64,000 nt of DNA from Rhodosorus marinus CCMP1338 (taxonomy: Eukaryota; Plantae; Rhodophyta), in the NCBI GenBank assembly GCA_029953675.1, contig JAMWBK010000006.1, forward strand, positions 1,860,001 through 1,924,000. The letters are read 5' to 3'. The translations under genes and the position numbers were made by a program. The notes beneath the pieces were generated by a model. That model made no database searches and was not told the DNA's origin. It was given only the letters and a program-made list of their open reading frames with translations. Each line of letters starts with the position of its first letter. Position 1 is the stretch's first letter. Shown in pieces: positions 3,867-24,310 of this stretch.

Positions 3867-5003
3867 ATGTCTAGCTTAGGATTCTTATCAGGTGCGATAC
3901 ATCATCAACCTCGGAATGGAATACGCCGAGTCTGCCACGTCGTAGCTGCTGTCCCGTCAATGGCCGAGTACGTCGAGGATCAGGTGTTGAGGAAGTTCGA
4001 CGCAGGTGACGTTGAGAGGGTAATAAAGTCCTGGCATTCTGCCAGAGATGGAGAGGTTTTGGAGAGTTTTCATGAAGATGGAAGCGTCCTTCAGCAAGCT
4101 GGATCGTTCATAGCCGGACTGGACGCCCGAAACTGGCACGAGGTGGATGAATACCAGTGGGCGCAGGGTTTGGAACAGGACTTTGAAGTGATAAGAGATG
4201 AGCTTGATAAATGCATGAAGCAGAGGTCATTGGAGAAACGTGGCAACAACATCTGGGCAACGGTAAGTTTTCTTGGAGCGGTTCCGGATATTTCATGCTG
4301 AAATGCTGACTGTGGCTGAGAGGTGAACTTGGTGATAGGCTGTGAAGGAAGAGGCAATGGCCTATGGACCAGATTGGCGAACGCTCGTACTTCAAGATAG
4401 GGGCATATGGGAACCGAAAAACTCGAAAATCTTCAAGGACACTGTGAAGATCCTTAAGAAGCATAAAGTACCTAGCTCCGAGGTCTTCTTCGCTCGGCAG
4501 TCTCCGAAAACGGGGATCAAACCCCACACTGATAACACTAACTTTATCTTGACAGCCCACCTCTCCCTCAGAGTACCAAAGGACAAGTAAGAGATGACCA
4601 ACAGCCAAAAAAGCGTCTAGTTTCCGGGAAGAAAGTCTTCCTTTCGTTGACGCCCCGGATCGTCACACTATGTACAGGAGCTGGATCAAGGTCGGAAACC
4701 AGCAAAGGTTTTGGGAAGACGGAAAGATGCTCATTTTCGATACGAGCTTCATGCATGAAACATGGAACGACGGAGATACAGACAGACATGTCCTGCTCAT
4801 TCGCTTTTGGCACCCAGAACTTTCTAGAAAAGAGGTAAGCTAAAAGAGCGCGTAGTAAGGGGGAGGAGCGGTGTCGGCTCGAGAACAACAATACAACTGA
4901 ACTGAGTCTGTGTGCTTCGCTTTTCATCAATCCTGAAAAGATTAAGGCCCTTGAAACAGTCTTCCGTGCGATTGAAGAATACGAAATGAAGGTCGCGTAC
5001 TAG
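3867..5003 (+). CDS. Aspartyl/asparaginyl beta-hydroxylase (AspH/LpxO-like) 2OG-Fe(II) dioxygenase with putative plastid transit peptide
   Basis: Introns 4263-4338 and 4587-4677, plus one near 4835. Motifs KPHTDNTN (HxD), FDTSFMHETWN (distal His) and DRHVLLIRFWHPEL (2OG-binding Arg, WHP). N-terminus MSSLGFLSG is Ser/Arg-rich. Confidence 0.88.
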
Positions 5004-6246: not shown

Positions 6247-8217
6247 ATGGGGACTTGGAACGTGATCATTCTTGTCTTAGGAATTGTGTTGACGAGATGT
6301 GAAGCTCTGTCTGAGAAGGTTGTAGAAATTGGACCTGAGAGTTTTGATAGCATCTCGAACGAGCTGTGCTGTTCACGGATGCTGATACAGTACGACCAGA
6401 TGGCAACGGTGAGCGTCTTATTTTCATTCATCTACTATTTTCGTCTGTTCCTCGCTGCGAATTTACCCTATCGGAGTTAAACTTACGTGATTGTACAATG
6501 GTTGTTGCAGATTTCGAGCGTGAAGATTGTGGCTAGTTCTGAGGACGAAGTCAACAAGGTCGACCCCACCATTTCCAATGGAAGTTTAAGATTGTTGCAG
6601 TTAGGTCAGCCATCAGAATCAGCGTTTGTTCAAGTATCGCTCGTGGTGGGCACCCCCATCAAAGAGATTTCGATCGGTTCCAGAAGTGAGGCGTTCGTCG
6701 TTGGTCGTTTGGGCTCCCCGATCGGCTCTATCGTGGCAATGGGAGACTCGCTTGTACGTTCTGACAGCATATGGACAAGCGTTGGTTTTGGACCACTGTC
6801 GCGCTACTCACATTGAGAACCTCAATCATCAGGTGCATCTAGGAGGAACCGTCTTTCCTTTGGACTTTGGTTTTCGAGTCGACGCAGGTGACAATGCCGC
6901 TGTGTGCGTAGACAATATTAGATGCCGCGACGATCAGTGTTCTGGTATGACCAACATGCTGACCAAGGACAACGGGGTTGTTGTTGTCCGAGGCGGCAGT
7001 TACCCGGGGCTAGCTACAAATATTGTGGGTCCAGGGTTTATCAGCACTTGTCCGCTTACAGTTATCAGAGGACAAGCCATTGTCACTGGTAAGAAGGATC
7101 GTCTTCAGTATACATTGCTACGCAATATGGTGGGGTACAAGACGCCAAACCTCAAAATTGTTCAACGTAAAACTCCCGCCTAGGCTCGGACGATAACGAG
7201 AACGGTGGAAGCATAGAAATGTGTGTCTCGCAAGTTTTAGAATCGGACATTACCGACGGTGGGAGCGTGACATACGATACTGCTTGTGCAGGGGACGATT
7301 TTGAATCGTTTGCTCGAGGAGCGGAAAACACTCCAGTTGAGGGCTGCAGTCAACCGTCGACGGCAGCATGCAGTGTCATTCTCACACCCGATAGTGGCCA
7401 AATCATTGAAGAATGTCCCTCTGACACGGATTGCAGAATCGTCTGCTTTGCGAAGGCTTCGACCATAAACACACTCCAGGTTGGATCTTCCAGAAGCTTA
7501 AATCTATTCACCCGCTAGGCGTGTTTTTTTGATTACTGAATCCGAATTGTGCAATTGTAATCACAATTCAGGGCTCTGACATCATTCCCAAGCGACTCTT
7601 TGAGGTTAGAGTAGGCGATCTCGTTCAATCCTACGACCTCGACGGTAGACAGTCCTTCTCCGAAGTTTTCTTGGTTCAACACGAAGGATCCAACGGCAAA
7701 GCCGTCCCGATGAATAAACTGCATTACGAGACTATGGGAGATCAAGAAGAAAAGCTCCAGGCTCTCACCGTGAGCGCATTGCACTATATTCTCAGCTCCA
7801 TTGTGCCCAAGATGGAGTACACGAAGGTGTCTGACCTAAACGTTGGGTCGCGCATCTTCATTCTGGATTGCACGGTATGCTTTTCACGCTCAGTTGCCTA
7901 ACCCGTTCAAGTAGAAGATTGTTTTCCTGACACTTCCTTGTGTACTTGCTGGTTAGGGCAAATATCAGAGTGCCACAATTAGAAAATTTGAGTACGTGCA
8001 CTCCCCAGCGGTCAACATCCATACCTTGAACGATCGCATTGTGGTCGATGGTGTGCTTGCTTCGAGCATCGCGTCTTTAAAGCTGTTTGGTGTTGTCGAT
8101 ACAATGCAGCTGCGATTGATGTTGCTGCCTCTCAAGGTCCTGTATCTTCTCGGAGCTTCTCGGTTGGTGCAAGTTTTGGATTCACTAGGTCACCGCGCTG
8201 TAAAGCAGTTTCTGTAA
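6247..8217 (+). CDS. Secreted Cys-rich protein with C-terminal Hedgehog-type Hint (Hog) domain, about 506 aa
   Basis: Six exons: 6247-6408, 6511-6753, 6833-7088, 7184-7479, 7572-7874, 7957-8217. Signal peptide MGTWNVIILVLGIVLTRCEA. Hint motifs CFAKASTI, VRVGDLVQS, FSEVFLVQH, LTVSALHYI, VSDLNVGSRI and TLNDRIVVDGVLASS, then a hydrophobic tail LMLLPLKVLYLL. Confidence 0.85.
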
Positions 8218-8692: not shown

Positions 8693-9643
8693 CTAATCCT
8701 CTGTCTTGGCTTTCTTCGCCGATTCGTCCCCAGTGTCCAACGGCGCCCTTTTGACGCGTTTGCTCTGCCGTTTTCACAAACGACGGAGAACGACTTCTTC
8801 AACAAACAGAGCGAATTCCCTAGCTTTCTCAACTTGGGTGAATGAAGCTTACCTGAAGAAGACCTTCTTCTTGAAGCGATTCTTTGGCTGACTTCTCACC
8901 CAATCCAAACTTCAGTGCTCGCATTCTTCGTTTCTCGAGTTCCTCCTCTGAAACAACCGGTGCTGCAGCGGGTTTCTTCTCAATTATTTGAGGTTGTGGC
9001 TTTTCGGGGTGGGACTGATCAAATCATAACGAGCAATTCGTTTTCTCTAAGATAACCCCGCAATCCTGATTAGGTATGAATCTTTGAGAGCGAAAATGGA
9101 CCCTACCGGCTTTGCCGAGGCTTTGATCGGCTCGTACGGAACGCCAAATCTTTCGGCTCGCCTTCTTCTCGCGGCTTCAAAATCGCTTTCCTGAGTTGTC
9201 GCTTCGGCGTTGGATCCTGCATCGGCAGCGTCTGGTTGTTTCTCTTCGTCCGTCTTCCCCATATCCGTTTCTAACTCCTTAGTTTCCGTCTGCTGCTTAG
9301 CCCTTTGGGTAGAAATTCAAGACGCTTCAGCTATCAAAATATCACGATTGGAAGACCCAAGCTATCTCGAAACCCGACTTTGGACCCCAAAAACCCATCC
9401 CACATATCCAAACGCAATAAGGACCACGAGGGGAACTTACTCTTCTTCAGACTTCACATCAGCCTCAGCATCCTGTCCATCTGAAGTTTGAGGAGCTACT
9501 TCCTCCGACGGATCTGGCTGACCTTCTGCAGCGATCGCCTCCTTCAATCTTTTCAACAGGACAGCCTTGAGACCAGCCGTATCCAATCCTCGCGCCTCGA
9601 GCTCTTTTCTAAGCTCGTCTACTTTCATCTTGTCGAGTTCCAT
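8693..9643 (-). CDS. SARNP: SAP-domain mRNA export factor SARNP/CIP29/THO1/MOS11 homolog
   Basis: SAP domain MKVDELRKELEARGLDTAGLKAVLLKRLKEAI, plus Tho1/MOS11-type motifs RRRRAERFG and KRRMRALKFG in downstream exons. Stop at 8693-8695. Confidence 0.85.
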
Positions 9644-11679: not shown

Positions 11680-14600
11680 AGCATCAATCCGTAGTGCTCC
11701 CAATCGGGATGGGACTTCTACAGCCAAAGCATGCGTTTGTGAGCAAATGTTTGCGGATGAACTAATGACTGAGGTGGAATGCACTACGCCTTTTGCAGGA
11801 ACGACTTGCGAACTTTGCACTCGAGGCGTTTGAAGAGATTGACGGTGCAATGGTTGCAAGACAGTACATTCCCTTTTCCGAACTCGTGTGCACGATTAAT
11901 CCTGGCAAGCTATCGCAAGAGGCCCCTTCGCAAAGCCCACAATCTACCTTCAAAGACGCGGATGAGTATATCTCCTATTTCGAGCCTCTTATTGTTGCAG
12001 AGCTGAAGGCAGAGTTCTCCAACGCTGTCGAAAAGTTTGCAAGGGATGGCGGAGAGGCTAGTGCATTTAGGTCCTCCTTGCCACCCCAGGGCAATCGGAA
12101 GGGCTCGTCTGGTCGCAAGGACGATGGTAGGTGTAGCTTCATTGGCCGCTTAACATGTGAACTGGAATTCAGAAGATTTCTTGTGGATCGCCAGCGGGTT
12201 GTCCACTGCGCGCGGTCATTCTGTTTGCGAAGGTTGAGAATACATTTCAGCTAGTTGAGGCTCAGCCCTTCAACAACCCACACAATGTAGGTCTCCGAGA
12301 GGGAGATACAATAGCAGCTTGGGCTTGCGGCAAGAGTCCCTCTGAAAAGCCGCAGAAGGCTCTCCCCGGGTCATCGGCAATTGGTATTGTCGAGCGCATA
12401 ACGCCTGTCGGCAACACCTTTGTCAAAGCTGTTCTGCCCGAAGCGTCGCCCCCCTTCAAGGATGGGACGGTGAGTCAACAATGAGATTAAATGGGTTCTT
12501 TAGCTCTCACGACTCTACTTTGGAAGCTTGGCCTAATACAGTGCACTCGTTATTGTGAAACCGTAGGAAGTTGTTCTCCTGAAGTTAGGCTCTATTATTA
12601 CGTATCAACGAGAGCGCGAGGCTCTTTACCGCTTGCCGAGGGCGACGCTACTATCTGCACTCCTACAGCCAGCATCTCCCATTGCCCAAGGAACCAATGC
12701 AAAGGTTTGAGGCTTAGCCGGAACCGGTTCAGGAATCGATTTTTGTTGCTTTTGAGCGCTTCTGGTGGTTCTGCTCCGCCGTCTTTCTCTAACAAGTTTG
12801 TCGCCTCTCTCTGATACCACAGAGAACCACAGCTCAGTTTCTGGAAATGGTTGTTTCCCGGAATGGGCTAAATCCATCACAAGCTGATGCCGTTGTCTCG
12901 GCAGTAAAATCCGGCACCGGTTTTGGAATCATACAAGGTTTGCCAAGCGCCATCTGTTTGCATAGTTGGAACTGGGTTTTCGTTCGGTCTGGTCCGTGCT
13001 ACTTACTCAAATTGTCGCGGCATTGATTAACTCTCCAGGTCCACCTGGAACTGGGAAAACACGAACACTTGTGGCGCTTCTGAACGTTATCCATGTCTTG
13101 GAGTACCAGGCGTACTACGAGAGTTTCCTCAGGTAGGTCAATCCGTGAACTCATTTTCAGTGTTGTTCCTGTTCCGCTGATTGGTGAGTGACTCACGGGA
13201 ACACAGGTCAATTCAAGTGCCGTTGTCAGACTCAAGGAGCGATTCTTCCTCAGGTCAGCGGCACAATGGAAACGCTACTAGACTGGACATGGATCAGAAC
13301 TCGGGAAGCTTGAAATCTATGCTTGCTTCTCTGGGGAAAACCCTCGCCGAGGTGCCTCGGGAGCGGTCACGGAGGCCGAGAATGCTGGTAAGTTCGAGAC
13401 AACATTCTAGTCGCGTGGGCTCTGATTATGATGCTAATTTTTTATATGTCCATGTTATTTGTATTCCAGGTTTGCGCACCATCTAATGCGGCAGTGGACG
13501 AAGCGCTAACGAGAATTATCAACGAAGGATTTCTCGACGACTATGGGCGCAGGTACAGCCCGGAGCTCGCACGATTGGGATCGAAGGAAGTAATCTCAAG
13601 CGGCGCTCGTTTCGTTTCAGCGCAGGGCCAGGTATGGCCCATTATCTGCCAATTCCTAATTTGGTGTTGAACCGAGTTGCTCCAAATTTGCATGGACATG
13701 TTTGCTAACACACAGCATCTGGCGGCTATCAGGCGGAAGCCTTTGTGGAGCGAGCCCTCGGACCGCACAATAAGAAAAGTCCGCACGCCGGGGATCCCAG
13801 CAGAATGCAGCATTGGATCAGCGACTGGACGAAAAGGTTCGGGTGCCCAGTAGCCAGTGCCGTTTGGCAGCGTCAGAACTAACAAGGCAATGAACAATCC
13901 CTGCTTACAGGACCGATAGACTGCTCCTCGAGCTAAAGCACACGAAGCGGACGCCTGAAATTGCACCAAAACTTGTAGATATCCATGAACAGCTGAGGAG
14001 GCTGGAGAGGGTGAGAATCTGAGGACAAGACTCCACCGCTCATTTGTTTCGGCCTGACCCCGGTTCCAATTCCGCAGGACATGGTGAGGTTTGAGATCGC
14101 CTCATCCACTGTGCTATCGAGAGAGGAGAAAGCAAGGAGAATTGAGAGAACGTACATAGAAGATGCACAATTGGTATTCGCTACGCTTTCCGGAGTAGCG
14201 ACACTCATGTCGGCTCTTGGAGGAGCTGATCTAACATTCGAAACGCTCGTAATTGACGAAGCTGCACAGGTACGGCACGAGCTTGCTTGACGCTTTTCGT
14301 GCATCCGTCTCCCGTGTTCAGCATCCCATTTAGTCCCATCCGCTGACTCTTTTCGCAGGCAACAGAGCCATCCTCCATAATACCGTTGGCGTTTGGAGTC
14401 CGGCGATGCATGATGGTTGGGGATCCTCAGCAGCTCCCAGCAACCATCTTCAGCACTGGCTCGACGAAGCTTGCTTACGGCATTAGCCTTTTGGAGAGGT
14501 CCGTGGAAGCACGGAAGAAAGTGCCATTTTTTCTTTCCTGACGTTAGTATATTTTGCCCGCACTTTCTCAGGCTTGTAAAAGCAGGTATGCCCGTGTTAC

Positions 14601-16382
14601 TGCTCGATACGCAGTACCGAATGCACCCCGCAATCAGCATGTTCCCGTCCAAGCATTTCTACAACTCCAGACTCCAAGATGGGGCGAATGTTTTGGGACC
14701 TGGACGGGCGAGATCTTACCATGACGACGATCGCAAGCCGCTCCTCGGACCATACGTCTTCGTCGATGTCAAGAGCGGCACCGAGGAGAAGAGTTCTGCT
14801 GAAAGGTGCGAATAATCGCTATGCTGTTTGGTCGCAACCTCGACACCGCCTCTCTTTCGTTTGTTGAGAGAAGCAATCACTGTATCCGTAGGTCGATGTA
14901 CAACTCTGCTGAGGCGGATCTTGCCATTTCGCTCGTGAAAAAGTTCTTATTTGAATTTGAGAACGAAATGCTCCCCGAAAAGGGCTCCCACGGCATCGCA
15001 GTGGTGACACCTTATAGGAAACAGCTCGTCGCGCTAAAACGGGCACTGTACAGGAAGAAGGTAAGGAACTGTGAATTGAAAGCTTAGGATGAAGTCGTGG
15101 ATGTGCTGGTGACGGAAATTTTGCCTTGGACTTTTCAGGTCCACTTGGGCGACGTCGAAGTAGATACGGTTGACGCTTTTCAGGGACGCGAAAAGGACGT
15201 GATCATTTTTAGCTGCGTTCGGACAACAATGAATCGAGGAATAGGATTCGTTAGGGACATTCGACGAATGAATGTTGGTATCACCCGAGCTCGATGCTCG
15301 ATGATCATTTTGGGAAATGCAGCGTCACTTTCGAGAGGCTCCGATGATTGGGATTCGCTTGTCCTGGACGCGAAAAGCCGAGGATTGTTTATTCAAGTCA
15401 ATGAAATGTCTCAGGACGTGACAATCAGCAACGTCCTACTTCCGGACTATGCTGCGAACAGTCATGGTAGGCACAAACACAAATTCTCCGCGGTACTTGG
15501 CTCGTTCTCAGTAAGTGTTTTTTCGTAGATTCCATGGGAAGTGGCTCGGAGACGACGCTTGCTCGAGATCCGCGCTTGAAACGAGAAGAGGAGCGGGCTA
15601 AGCTGCTCAGCGAGACACGCGGGAAGCGAACGGCAGCGAGGAGTGACCCTAGGAAGACGTTTGATAGCACGACTGTTAAAGTAAGCTATGAAAACACGTT
15701 CTCGAAAGGTAGTGAGCATATCGTTCTCATAGGTGATTTTCAGTACTGATGCATAAATTGTTCGCAGGCGAGTGGTTTTGAGTCGAACGATGAAAGCTCC
15801 GACAACGACTCGAGGACGAACGCGGTCGCTGATGGTCGCTTAGAGGACTTGAGCAAACTTGAGGGACTGGGACTCATGGTGTCGAAGTATCTGGATTCGC
15901 GGAAAAGAAAACAATCGGCTGTTGAACCTCCGACTGCAGAGGGTCTCCCGGAAAAAGCTCCCGAAGCGCACAAGATTTCGACGACTTCAGACCCCAGGAG
16001 GCCTAGATCCATGGAACAAACAAGTGCCGTCTTGGCAGAGGATACGGATGGGTCCCACCCATCCGCATCCATTACAGGGGAGCAGAAGGACGGCGGCAAG
16101 GGCGAAAAGACGAAAGCAAATGCAAATGAGAATAGCGCTCCACCAAAAGCCCTAAATGCGTACGATCCTAGAAAACGGAGACCGGTCGAGCACGCAAGTG
16201 TTGTCTTGCAACCGGGAGTGAAGATTCCAACAAACGAGTCGCTTTCAGCAATGCCAGAGCAGAGGGACTCTGGAGCAAAGATTGGAATGTCCTCCTCCCT
16301 GCAAGACGCAATTAAGGCCTTGCACTCTGCCGTGAACTCGGCAACCGCCGACGGTATTCTCAAGAACAGCAAGTCATCTTGA
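11680..16382 (+). CDS. SEN1: SEN1/senataxin-like superfamily 1B RNA/DNA helicase (5' end uncertain)
   Basis: Spliced motifs IQ|GPPGTGKT, CAPSNAAVDE, VIDEAAQ, MVGDPQQLPAT, LDTQYRMHPAIS, VVTPYRKQ and VDTVDAFQGREKDVIIFSCVR..GIGFVRDIRRMNVGITRAR. Pre-helicase YFEPLIVAE and ITYQRE motifs are present. Low-complexity C-terminal tail. Confidence 0.93.
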
Positions 16383-22390: not shown

Positions 22391-24160
22391 AGCTCTACGC
22401 CTCCTATTTAGTAAATTCACATTTGTACCCTAGTTTAGCGGTCGGTCATAGCCTCACTGGACTGGACGCGGCAGGCATAGATTGCTACGCACCGAGATGT
22501 AGCAAATTCGTCAACCTCCCAGTTAGAACTGCGTCAAGAATGGACATATGGACAATCATATCTCCTCGATTTATCGTAACTCACGAGTCACAACCTCTGA
22601 AATTCTTCACTTAAACCCAAGAGCTTTCTGCTCCCTCAAACAAAAAAGGTCAAGAACTTCATGTTCCATTCCACTGCATGCAAGCTCTAACGTCAGGCCC
22701 GGTGCACCCACCCACCCCGGACAGAAAAAGAGAAGCGCGCAACCCAACAAGTAGACGAAGCAAAGGGACAGATATTCAACTGCTCTCAGAACACCGTGGC
22801 CTTGGAAAACGGAACAGGGTGAGACAAAAAAAAATTCCAAGAAGCTCCCGCGCTGCTCCCTCCCTCAAGAATGTCTCACCACCCGAGACAAAAAAAACGA
22901 AAAAAAAACCACAAAACTTCACCAAAGTTCCCCACACAACGAATGCTGGGCAAAACTCCGCTCTCTCCCACTTCACGAATTCGGACACTCAGCCCTTACA
23001 AGTACTTTCTCACATCCGTTCCCTAACGTTTGCCCAGCTTTTTCACTTTGTTTTTCATTCTATGTCCTCACCATGCGGAACAGAAAACGTTATCCCACAT
23101 TTCTTTCCACTATATTAATGATCCGCTTCCAAAAGTTTCCCCCTTCTCCCTTTCAAGGCACTTTTATCAGCCCACCTTCGAACTCCCGATTCCCATTCAA
23201 AAAAAAATATGACAGAAAATCCCTTCCCAAAACAAACCCCTTCCCCCCCCCCCCCAAAACACAATAAACATCGTTTTTGGAAAACAAAAAAATACAATCC
23301 ACAATTGTCGAATATATTTTTACATAAATATCCATTATAGACAATACTCGCAGGGGGGTGAGATTAGGGGATTCCAGACTAAAAACCTGCCCGTTCCAAT
23401 TTCTGCGCAACGAAGGCATAAAACAAAAAAGGCATCGTCACTACTACCAGTGGAAGTATGAGAGACTTAAAATATTTCCTGCTCTGGTGAAATACTTTTT
23501 AACTGTTCCGATATGAGGAGGTTGGGTTTTTTGTTTTTGGGCGCGGGATGATAATTTACAGGTTAGCAAAATTCGCTCCTCCTCCCCCCCCCCCGCGCTT
23601 CCGCGTTAACAGCGTGAATCCCCTGGCGCACCAATAAAAAAAAAAAAAGAGGGGGAACGTGTCGGTGTGAGATACAAATAGCCAAAAATACCATAACAAT
23701 CCCTGGAATGGGAAAAAAGTTTTATAATTCAAAGGTCGGGTTGCGCTGGATTAAGGCGTATTTCAGCTAATGATTAACGGGAAAAGATCTTCTGTCATGG
23801 AAATGCGCCTAGATTTGTAAGTAAGTACCTGCAGAAGGATAATGCAGGAATAATACTTGCTGCAATCCGTGTAGTATTTTTCAAAAAAGATCCAGAAACA
23901 GAGAGAACACATCGTACAACGTCAAAAGAGATGGGGAGGGGGACGAAGCGAATCAAAAATAGGATTTAAGACTCGTACGTATAGTGGCAAGAAGAGGGGG
24001 GCGGGCGGAGATGTTTTTTAAATCTCAACATGTTTGGATCTTACGGCGTTTAGTAGTGTTTAGTAGTAGAGGGGGGCCGAATTGAGTATAACAAAACATA
24101 GGATTCCGAGTAGGGTCAAAACTGTTCAGAATTCTTATGTTCTTCGTTTGGGATCTGTTG

Positions 24161-24310
24161 AATATTTTATAGTCTTTTATTATTGACAAGAACCCACAAA
24201 ATATATAGTGAATATTTTACGGTCTTTTATTATCTTCAAGAACATAAAAAAATATAGAGAATATTTCATGGTCTTTTATTGTCTTCAAGAAAACACAAAA
24301 TATGTGGTAG
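24161..24310. repeat. Degenerate AT-rich tandem repeat, 3 copies of about 50 bp
   Basis: Units start at 24161, 24211 and 24260, each resembling aatattttayggtcttttattatcttcaagaac..aaaatat. Confidence 0.85.

Follow-up and report, generated by a model that had tools for sequence, protein, structure and literature searches.

A secreted Hog protein of the red-algal type in Rhodosorus marinus carries an orphan cysteine-rich N-terminal domain

The subject of this analysis is a gene in a 64,000-nucleotide stretch of the genome of the red alga Rhodosorus marinus CCMP1338 (hereafter the window; positions 1,860,001 to 1,924,000 of the 2.47-Mb contig JAMWBK010000006.1, assembly GCA_029953675.1). The predicted product consists of a signal peptide, an N-terminal domain of 287 residues (the N-domain, or cargo), a cysteine at position 308 that opens the motif CFAKAS, a Hint fold, and a two-helix tail. 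We found that this is a single expressed gene of R. marinus, that its Hog part is typical of red algae and of a kind known since 2008, and that its cargo is an orphan, as is usual for Hog cargos. The N-domain is a real, constrained, lineage-restricted extracellular domain without a recognised fold. By analogy with the Hedgehog mechanism, the most likely fate of the protein, to which we assign a probability of about 0.62, is that it would cleave itself between V307 and C308 and free the N-domain with its C terminus esterified, most plausibly to a membrane sterol.

The gene comprises six exons on the forward strand (6247-6408, 6511-6753, 6833-7088, 7184-7479, 7572-7874, and 7957-8217), separated by five GT..AG introns of 102, 79, 95, 92, and 82 nucleotides (nt). 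The joined exons make up 1521 nt, or 506 codons plus a stop, and their translation shows 100% identity along its entire length to the NCBI entry "hypothetical protein NDN08_000810 [Rhodosorus marinus]"; the orthologs already bear the UniRef label "Hint domain-containing protein." Two complementary DNA (cDNA) contigs from another Rhodosorus strain, L002 and L003, contain an uninterrupted, intronless coding sequence of 1521 nt that aligns without gaps to the spliced window sequence at 89% nucleotide and 86% amino acid identity. The presence of the same continuous 506-codon frame in spliced transcripts means that the N-domain and the Hint module belong to one gene, as the original prediction had it, and expression was seen in sister strains. 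On cDNA contig L002, positions 2229 to 2963 of the reverse strand are part of a convergent downstream gene, an arrangement that suggests either that the 3' ends of the two genes overlap or that the assembled transcript is a chimera including the neighbour.

The five introns of the window gene had to be inferred from sequence, and we therefore weighed an annotation artefact, in which N-terminal and Hint exons come from separate genes or the N-terminal region is noncoding. We found no support for it. It is refuted by the transcript data, beginning with the continuous frame in the spliced cDNA of the other strain. Three independent transcriptome-derived proteins from other Rhodosorus strains also span the whole protein (100%), with identities of 81-88%. 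The transcript protein P0004 (535 residues, another strain) contains 29 additional residues precisely where exons 2 and 3 meet, after residue 135 and before residue 136; this insert matches the in-frame translation of the homologous intron 2, so P0004 is an intron-retention isoform that marks the same splice site. The constraint on the N-domain described below, with all 12 of its cysteines invariant, likewise speaks against an artefact, to which we attach next to no credence. Intron 2 of the window gene itself (6754-6832, 79 nt) contains an in-frame stop, and its retention here would truncate the protein.

Judged by its sequence and predicted fold, the C-terminal half is a Hog domain of the red-algal type. 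When a clade profile built from the six closest Hog sequences was run against the PDB, it matched the Drosophila Hedgehog chains 6TYY, 6TD6, and 1AT0 with E values of 2.9e-12 to 8.5e-11, and the next matches stood at 0.01 or weaker. The best-scoring chain, 6TYY, is an engineered D46H mutant and ranks first because it shares the His at position 46. In the profile alignment to full-length 6TD6, the match passed beyond the Hint fold into the sterol-recognition region (SRR), as far as residue 421, and paired LLPLKVLY with LAPMRLLS. Foldseek comparison of the AlphaFold model also placed 1AT0 and 6TYY at ranks 1 and 2 (template modelling score, 0.71-0.72), ahead of BIL domains and inteins. In the same model the tail forms two helices, at residues 469-484 and 488-505, a layout comparable to the helix-loop-helix of the Hedgehog SRR (PMC7906309). 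Conservation extends to the catalytic Cys and to the block-B His, and the earlier assignment of a Hedgehog-type Hint/Hog module was upheld. In the proposed check against the Pfam Hint family (PF01079), the family matched residues 307 to 462 of the window protein (E = 2.4e-5), with a score of 24.5 bits that lies below the curated gathering cut-off of 29.7 bits, a detection threshold rather than a biological criterion. Precomputed Pfam annotation lists PF01079 for the window protein and all relatives and, unmarked, for the L002 ortholog. The Hedge domain (HH_signal) had no Pfam match even at E<=1.

The original prediction had read SALH in block B, His for Asp in FSEVFLVQH, and Val before the catalytic Cys as departures from the Hedgehog pattern. 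Searches with profiles of red-algal Hogs yielded 47 relatives, which we aligned to a Hog hidden Markov model; one of these homology searches did not list the query's own clade, is therefore not exhaustive, and leaves room for further Rhodosorus Hog paralogs. At the position of D46, His was present in 44 of 46 relatives, with one Glu and one Asp, the latter in an evident animal-type Hedgehog. The H72 position held His throughout (46/46), the T69 position held Thr in 28 and Ser in 18, and Thr or Ser occupied the C143 position in 36 of 46. Every relative that covered Cys1 had it (42/42), and the commonest residue before it was Val (18/42). The Pro of motif K is kept in most relatives, and the Rhodosorus LLPLK aligns to LAPMR of Drosophila. 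Across the closest clade of eight members, C308, F309, H356, S387, H390, and S457 are invariant, and the sub-clade, whose named members are Bangiopsis and Purpureofilum, carries the signatures SxxH, FSEVFLVQH (FSEV[FY]LVQH), and NIHTMNDRIVVDGV. A similar picture emerges from the catalogue of Bürglin 2008, which covers Hog proteins of Chondrus, Gracilaria, Porphyra, and Griffithsia (PMC2362128). According to that catalogue, red algae and moss retain motifs J and K but have Ser, Thr, or Asp instead of the motif-J Cys; in the supplementary sequences His takes the place of the Asp, and the residue preceding Cys-Phe is Val, Glu, or Ala. As SALH, His356, and Val307 are usual among its relatives, they do not set the protein apart but mark it as a red-algal-type Hog.

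The features that had been read directly from the sequence were all found as described: a signal peptide, 12 cysteines in residues 21 to 307, C308 in CFAKAS preceded by V307, FSEVFLVQH with H356, and SALH within TVSALH, with S387 and H390. The putative signal peptide is built around the hydrophobic stretch VIILVLGIVL, has small side chains at both -3 and -1, and shows a Kyte-Doolittle hydropathy of 1.65 for the scanning frame from residue 3. Of 15 cysteines in total, one lies in the signal peptide (C18), 12 in the N-domain (41, 42, 160, 166, 171, 208, 234, 255, 275, 283, 298, and 304), and the remaining two are C308 and C419. The 12 N-domain cysteines are invariant in three strains, and other strains have Ser in place of C18 and C419. 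The N-domain has an acidic composition with abundant Ser, Val, and Gly and a single N-x-S sequon at N77, and its 287 mature residues make it the longest cargo among the tabulated relatives, the others having 6 to 183 residues before the Cys. Comparison of the window gene with another strain gave ratios of nonsynonymous to synonymous substitution rates (dN/dS) of 0.30 for the N-domain, 0.18 for the Hint module, and 0.04 for the tail, a last value that reflects one nonsynonymous against eight synonymous changes and on which we do not lean; in a third strain 6 of the 49 tail residues are substituted. The N-domain is thus under purifying selection.

The N-domain is the only new or unusual part of the protein, with no homologue outside Rhodosorus among the sequences searched. 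A phmmer search of 1.84 billion representative proteins retrieved nothing beyond the Rhodosorus cluster to which it belongs, PDB searches with the full-length single protein and with an N-domain profile gave nothing at E<=10, and NCBIfam held no match to it. In Pfam the one candidate was XRCC1_N (E, 0.07-0.17), which appeared with one of three orthologs and was rejected as not reproducible. The description of the domain as unrecognised therefore stands, and no match to a family already described with Hog domains was found. AlphaFold gave mean predicted local distance difference test scores (pLDDT) of 44 for the full-length protein and 37 for the N-domain alone, and both models, of low confidence, consist mostly of beta strands. 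No Foldseek match to the low-confidence N-domain model had E<1; the weak matches were mostly beta-solenoids, an identification that we dropped after finding no sequence periodicity (best z of ~2 among 60 offsets). Comparisons with other cargos covered the N-domain or its Cys-rich last third. A relation to the 8-Cys cargo of the nearest Hog relatives was rejected (hhalign probability, 0.1%), as was one to the upstream region of Pyropia Hog2 (BLASTP E, 2.7). Relative to those nearest relatives, the cargo of Rhodosorus is either a replacement or newly evolved.

If the protein works as Hedgehog does, the signal peptide would direct it to the endoplasmic reticulum, where the 287-residue N-domain would fold with up to six disulfides. 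The Hint module would carry out an N-to-S acyl shift at V307-C308, aided by S387 and H390, and the thioester, perhaps relayed to S457 as an oxy-ester, would be attacked by a hydroxyl nucleophile that H356 activates and the two-helix tail positions. The N-domain (residues 21 to 307) would be freed with an esterified C terminus, and a 199-residue Hog fragment would remain. The most plausible adduct would be a membrane sterol, in Rhodosorus mainly 24-methylcholesta-5,22-dien-3beta-ol, and the N-domain, acidic, beta-rich, and now carrying a lipid tag, would end up at the cell surface or in the extracellular matrix. We infer cleavage, nucleophile, and localisation alike by homology with Hedgehog. 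Experimental work on the animal enzyme lends plausibility to the natural His: Drosophila Hedgehog D303H keeps the wild-type structure (root mean square deviation, 0.4 Å), has the same pKa and comparable cholesterolysis, and accepts non-native sterols far better, according to a review (PMC9163320). Because that mutant is active, the His of Rhodosorus would be a competent general base. The replacement of Thr by Ser in block B is conservative. In Rhodosorus sp. CS-210, 24-methylcholesta-5,22E-dien-3beta-ol accounts for 71.8% of the sterols (PMC12256458). A sterol is the obvious adduct candidate because that strain is rich in a 3-beta-hydroxysterol and because the D46H enzyme is sterol-tolerant.

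Several points weigh against self-cleavage with sterol attachment. Val at the -1 position is beta-branched, and such residues may slow the acyl shift in inteins. Inteins also use Ser or Thr at their +1 position, and Ser457 could by that analogy act as the relay nucleophile. This is a weak point: C143A and C143D abolish the processing of Sonic Hedgehog, in which C143 has been proposed to carry a branched thioester like the intein +1 residue (PMC12054796), and Rhodosorus has Ser at that position. The single-sequence Pfam Hint score lies under its gathering cut-off, and AlphaFold modelled the Hint part with moderate confidence (pLDDT, 60-78). The tail, at ~49 residues, is shorter than animal SRRs and has only motif K recognisably in common with them, so that by its sequence it would not establish sterol specificity. 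On the biochemistry or function of red-algal Hogs, the literature searched contained nothing beyond Bürglin 2008.

The same observations bear on two other accounts of what the module does. The Hog module could cleave itself and have the (thio)ester resolved by water or a small nucleophile, in which case the N-domain would be soluble and unlipidated and the module a device for maturation or secretion only. C1, block B, and His72 suffice for thioester formation and none of them is missing, and the short tail with its lone motif K fits such a scheme; in nematodes, Bürglin is said to have renamed the corresponding region the adduct recognition region, its adduct being unknown. The Hedgehog thioester, moreover, can be resolved by thiols without a sterol, dithiothreitol driving N-terminal cleavage (PMC12054796). 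What this account explains poorly is the near-invariant His at the general-base position (44/46) and the strong conservation of the tail, because hydrolysis needs no second substrate to be activated or positioned. We consider it unlikely, though the more serious of the two.

The other account, which we rate as distinctly less probable still, is that the Hint module is catalytically dead, the protein staying intact and attached to the membrane through the hydrophobic helices of its C terminus and the Hog domain serving as an anchor or structural domain. Three of five Hedgehog active-site residues are indeed substituted (D46H, T69S, and C143S), substitutions of C143 kill Sonic Hedgehog processing (PMC12054796), and the Pfam shortfall could be read in the same sense. 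Yet the substitutions are chemically conservative and fixed across the clade, Cys1 and His72 are invariant, and D46H is active by experiment (PMC9163320). The tail (residues 458 to 506) is moderately hydrophobic, and its 19-residue Kyte-Doolittle maxima reach 1.5-1.7, below typical transmembrane values. The invariance of the active site across the clade, together with the Hint dN/dS of 0.18, which indicates constraint, argues against a dead module.

The genomic surroundings (Table 1) gave no support to the suggestion of a Hedgehog-analogous signalling system, a reading that is conjecture. The five flanking genes, which encode a PfkB-type kinase, a TPR protein, an Asp/Arg beta-hydroxylase, a SAP-domain protein, and a helicase, are unrelated to such a system, and a functional linkage with them was dismissed, as none is evident. 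Enzymes of the Asp_Arg_Hydrox family modify Cys-rich secreted domains in animals; that such a gene adjoins one for a Cys-rich, Asp/Asn-rich secreted protein may be coincidence. A tblastn search for paralogs in the window found only the gene itself, and the window contains no tRNA or Rfam family. A tandem repeat with an AT-rich unit of 49 bp (2.9 copies, 82% matches) occupies positions 24159 to 24303.

Table 1. Features of the Hog gene and its neighbours, in window coordinates (L001 coordinates in parentheses)
Feature	Position	Strand	Basis or remark
Whole gene, start to stop codon	6247..8217	+	6 exons, 506-residue Hog precursor; splice model, identical NCBI protein, cDNA match
Signal peptide, residues 1-20 (MGTWNVIILVLGIVLTRCEA, predicted cleavage after CEA)	6247..6306	+	Read from the sequence by inspection
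Orphan N-domain (cargo), residues 21-307, exons 1-4	6307..7443	+	
Predicted scissile bond, codons V307 (gtc) and C308 (tgc)	7441..7446	+	Alignment to Drosophila Hedgehog C258; Cys-Phe invariant in all relatives
Hint module, residues 308-457, exons 4-6	7444..8067	+	Pfam Hint, clade profile against PDB, Foldseek
H356 codon (cac), position of Hedgehog general base D303/D46	7680..7682	+	
Block B S387-A-L-H390, equivalent to TxxH (T69/H72)	7773..7784	+	
S457 codon (agc), position of Hedgehog C400/C143 (motif J)	8065..8067	+	
C-terminal tail, residues 458-506, motif K (LLPLK) and two predicted helices	8068..8214	+	Resembles sterol/adduct-recognition region
Upstream gene, 287-residue protein, Pfam Asp_Arg_Hydrox (aspartyl/asparaginyl beta-hydroxylase)	about 3867-5003 (L001 7621-8757)	+	Immediately upstream, same strand
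SAP-domain gene	about 8693-9628	-	Downstream
Gene for 1118-residue protein, Pfam AAA_11/AAA_12, probably helicase	11709-16382 (L001 15463-20136)	+	Downstream of SAP-domain gene

The general idea of a secreted, Cys-containing, lineage-specific N-domain freed by a Hog module, perhaps with a sterol-like adduct, is not new, having been proposed in 2008 for red algae and other protists; the N termini of non-animal Hog proteins were described then as diverse, conserved only in small groups, and often equipped with conserved cysteines and a signal peptide (PMC2362128). Whether non-animal Hogs attach a lipid or sterol to their cargo has been a question since that catalogue, and the Rhodosorus gene is a clean candidate for testing it, with a confirmed gene model, a compact Hog domain, a natural His like that of the sterol-tolerant D46H enzyme, a natural Ser at the position of Cys143, and a main host sterol other than cholesterol. 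Its chief value lies in being a convenient case for non-animal sterylation and for the natural His46/Ser143 chemistry. Many other red-algal Hogs would be equally suitable, and the value specific to this locus is modest. We offer as a tentative and rather doubtful extension that the 287-residue N-domain could be a new family or fold confined to Rhodosorus and tethered by a His-based Hog to an algal C28 sterol. If so, a unicellular red alga would possess a surface protein anchored by a sterol, acting as an adhesin, a matrix organiser, or a cell-cell cue, and this would be the first directly testable protein sterylation outside animals.

Among known systems, the red-algal Hogs of Bürglin 2008 (Chondrus, Gracilaria, Porphyra/Pyropia, and Griffithsia; PMC2362128) share with the Rhodosorus protein the succession of signal peptide, lineage-specific N-region, and Hog, as well as His in place of the Asp, a Val, Glu, or Ala residue preceding Cys-Phe, Ser, Thr, or Asp at motif J, and a motif K of the form APLR or LPLK. 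They differ in having TxxH in block B, where the Rhodosorus clade has SxxH, and in their unrelated N-regions of 6 to 183 residues, often low-complexity or acidic, compared to 287 residues with 12 Cys in Rhodosorus. The closest Hog relatives (Bangiopsis sp. CCMP1999 P0005/P0010, Purpureofilum apyrenoidigerum P0007, and P0006, P0008, P0011, P0018, P0024, and P0035) are 38-41% identical in the Hog, share FSEV[FY]LVQH, SxxH, NIHTMNDRIVVDGV, and LLP[LM]K, and are all secreted. Their N-domain, in contrast, has ~90-100 residues and 8 Cys and bears no detectable relation to that of Rhodosorus. In P0005, P0006, P0007, P0008, P0011, P0018, P0024, and P0035 this cargo follows the pattern C-x-[YF]-x4-C-x5-C-x8-C, with four more Cys thereafter and no annotation seen, and it has the appearance of a separate conserved family of cargo, seen in Bangiopsis and Purpureofilum. 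Three other red-algal-type Hogs (P0032, P0033, and P0034) carry yet another N-domain, with 12 to 14 Cys and motifs such as CETMSATCTLPECC and ECYKGCC, and so add a further case of cargo swapping on a constant Hog module.

Outside the red algae, Drosophila and vertebrate Hedgehog-C (1AT0 and 6TD6; D46H, 6TYY) has in common with the Rhodosorus module the Hint fold, Cys1-Phe2, and the block-B His, with an alignment that extends into the first SRR helix, and the engineered general-base swap of 6TYY, which retains cholesterolysis, matches the natural Rhodosorus His. The identity is ~24-25%, however, and Rhodosorus lacks a Hedge domain (HH_signal), has Val for Gly at -1, Ser for Thr69, and Ser for Cys143, and has a shorter tail; at the cleavage site, Asp46, and Cys143 of Hedgehog proper it shows Val-Cys-Phe, His356, and Ser457 instead. 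The nematode warthog, groundhog, and quahog proteins and the choanoflagellate Hoglet resemble it in placing varied secreted N-terminal cargo on a Hog (PMC2362128, PMC1636047), but they belong to other lineages, with unrelated cargo domains and animal-type Hog motifs. Inteins and BIL domains share the Hint fold (Foldseek E, 1e-7 to 1e-4), but the Rhodosorus protein has no C-extein and no junction of terminal His-Asn and +1 nucleophile, ending instead with a helical tail of 49 residues past motif J, and Hedgehog-C ranked above inteins by both sequence and fold.

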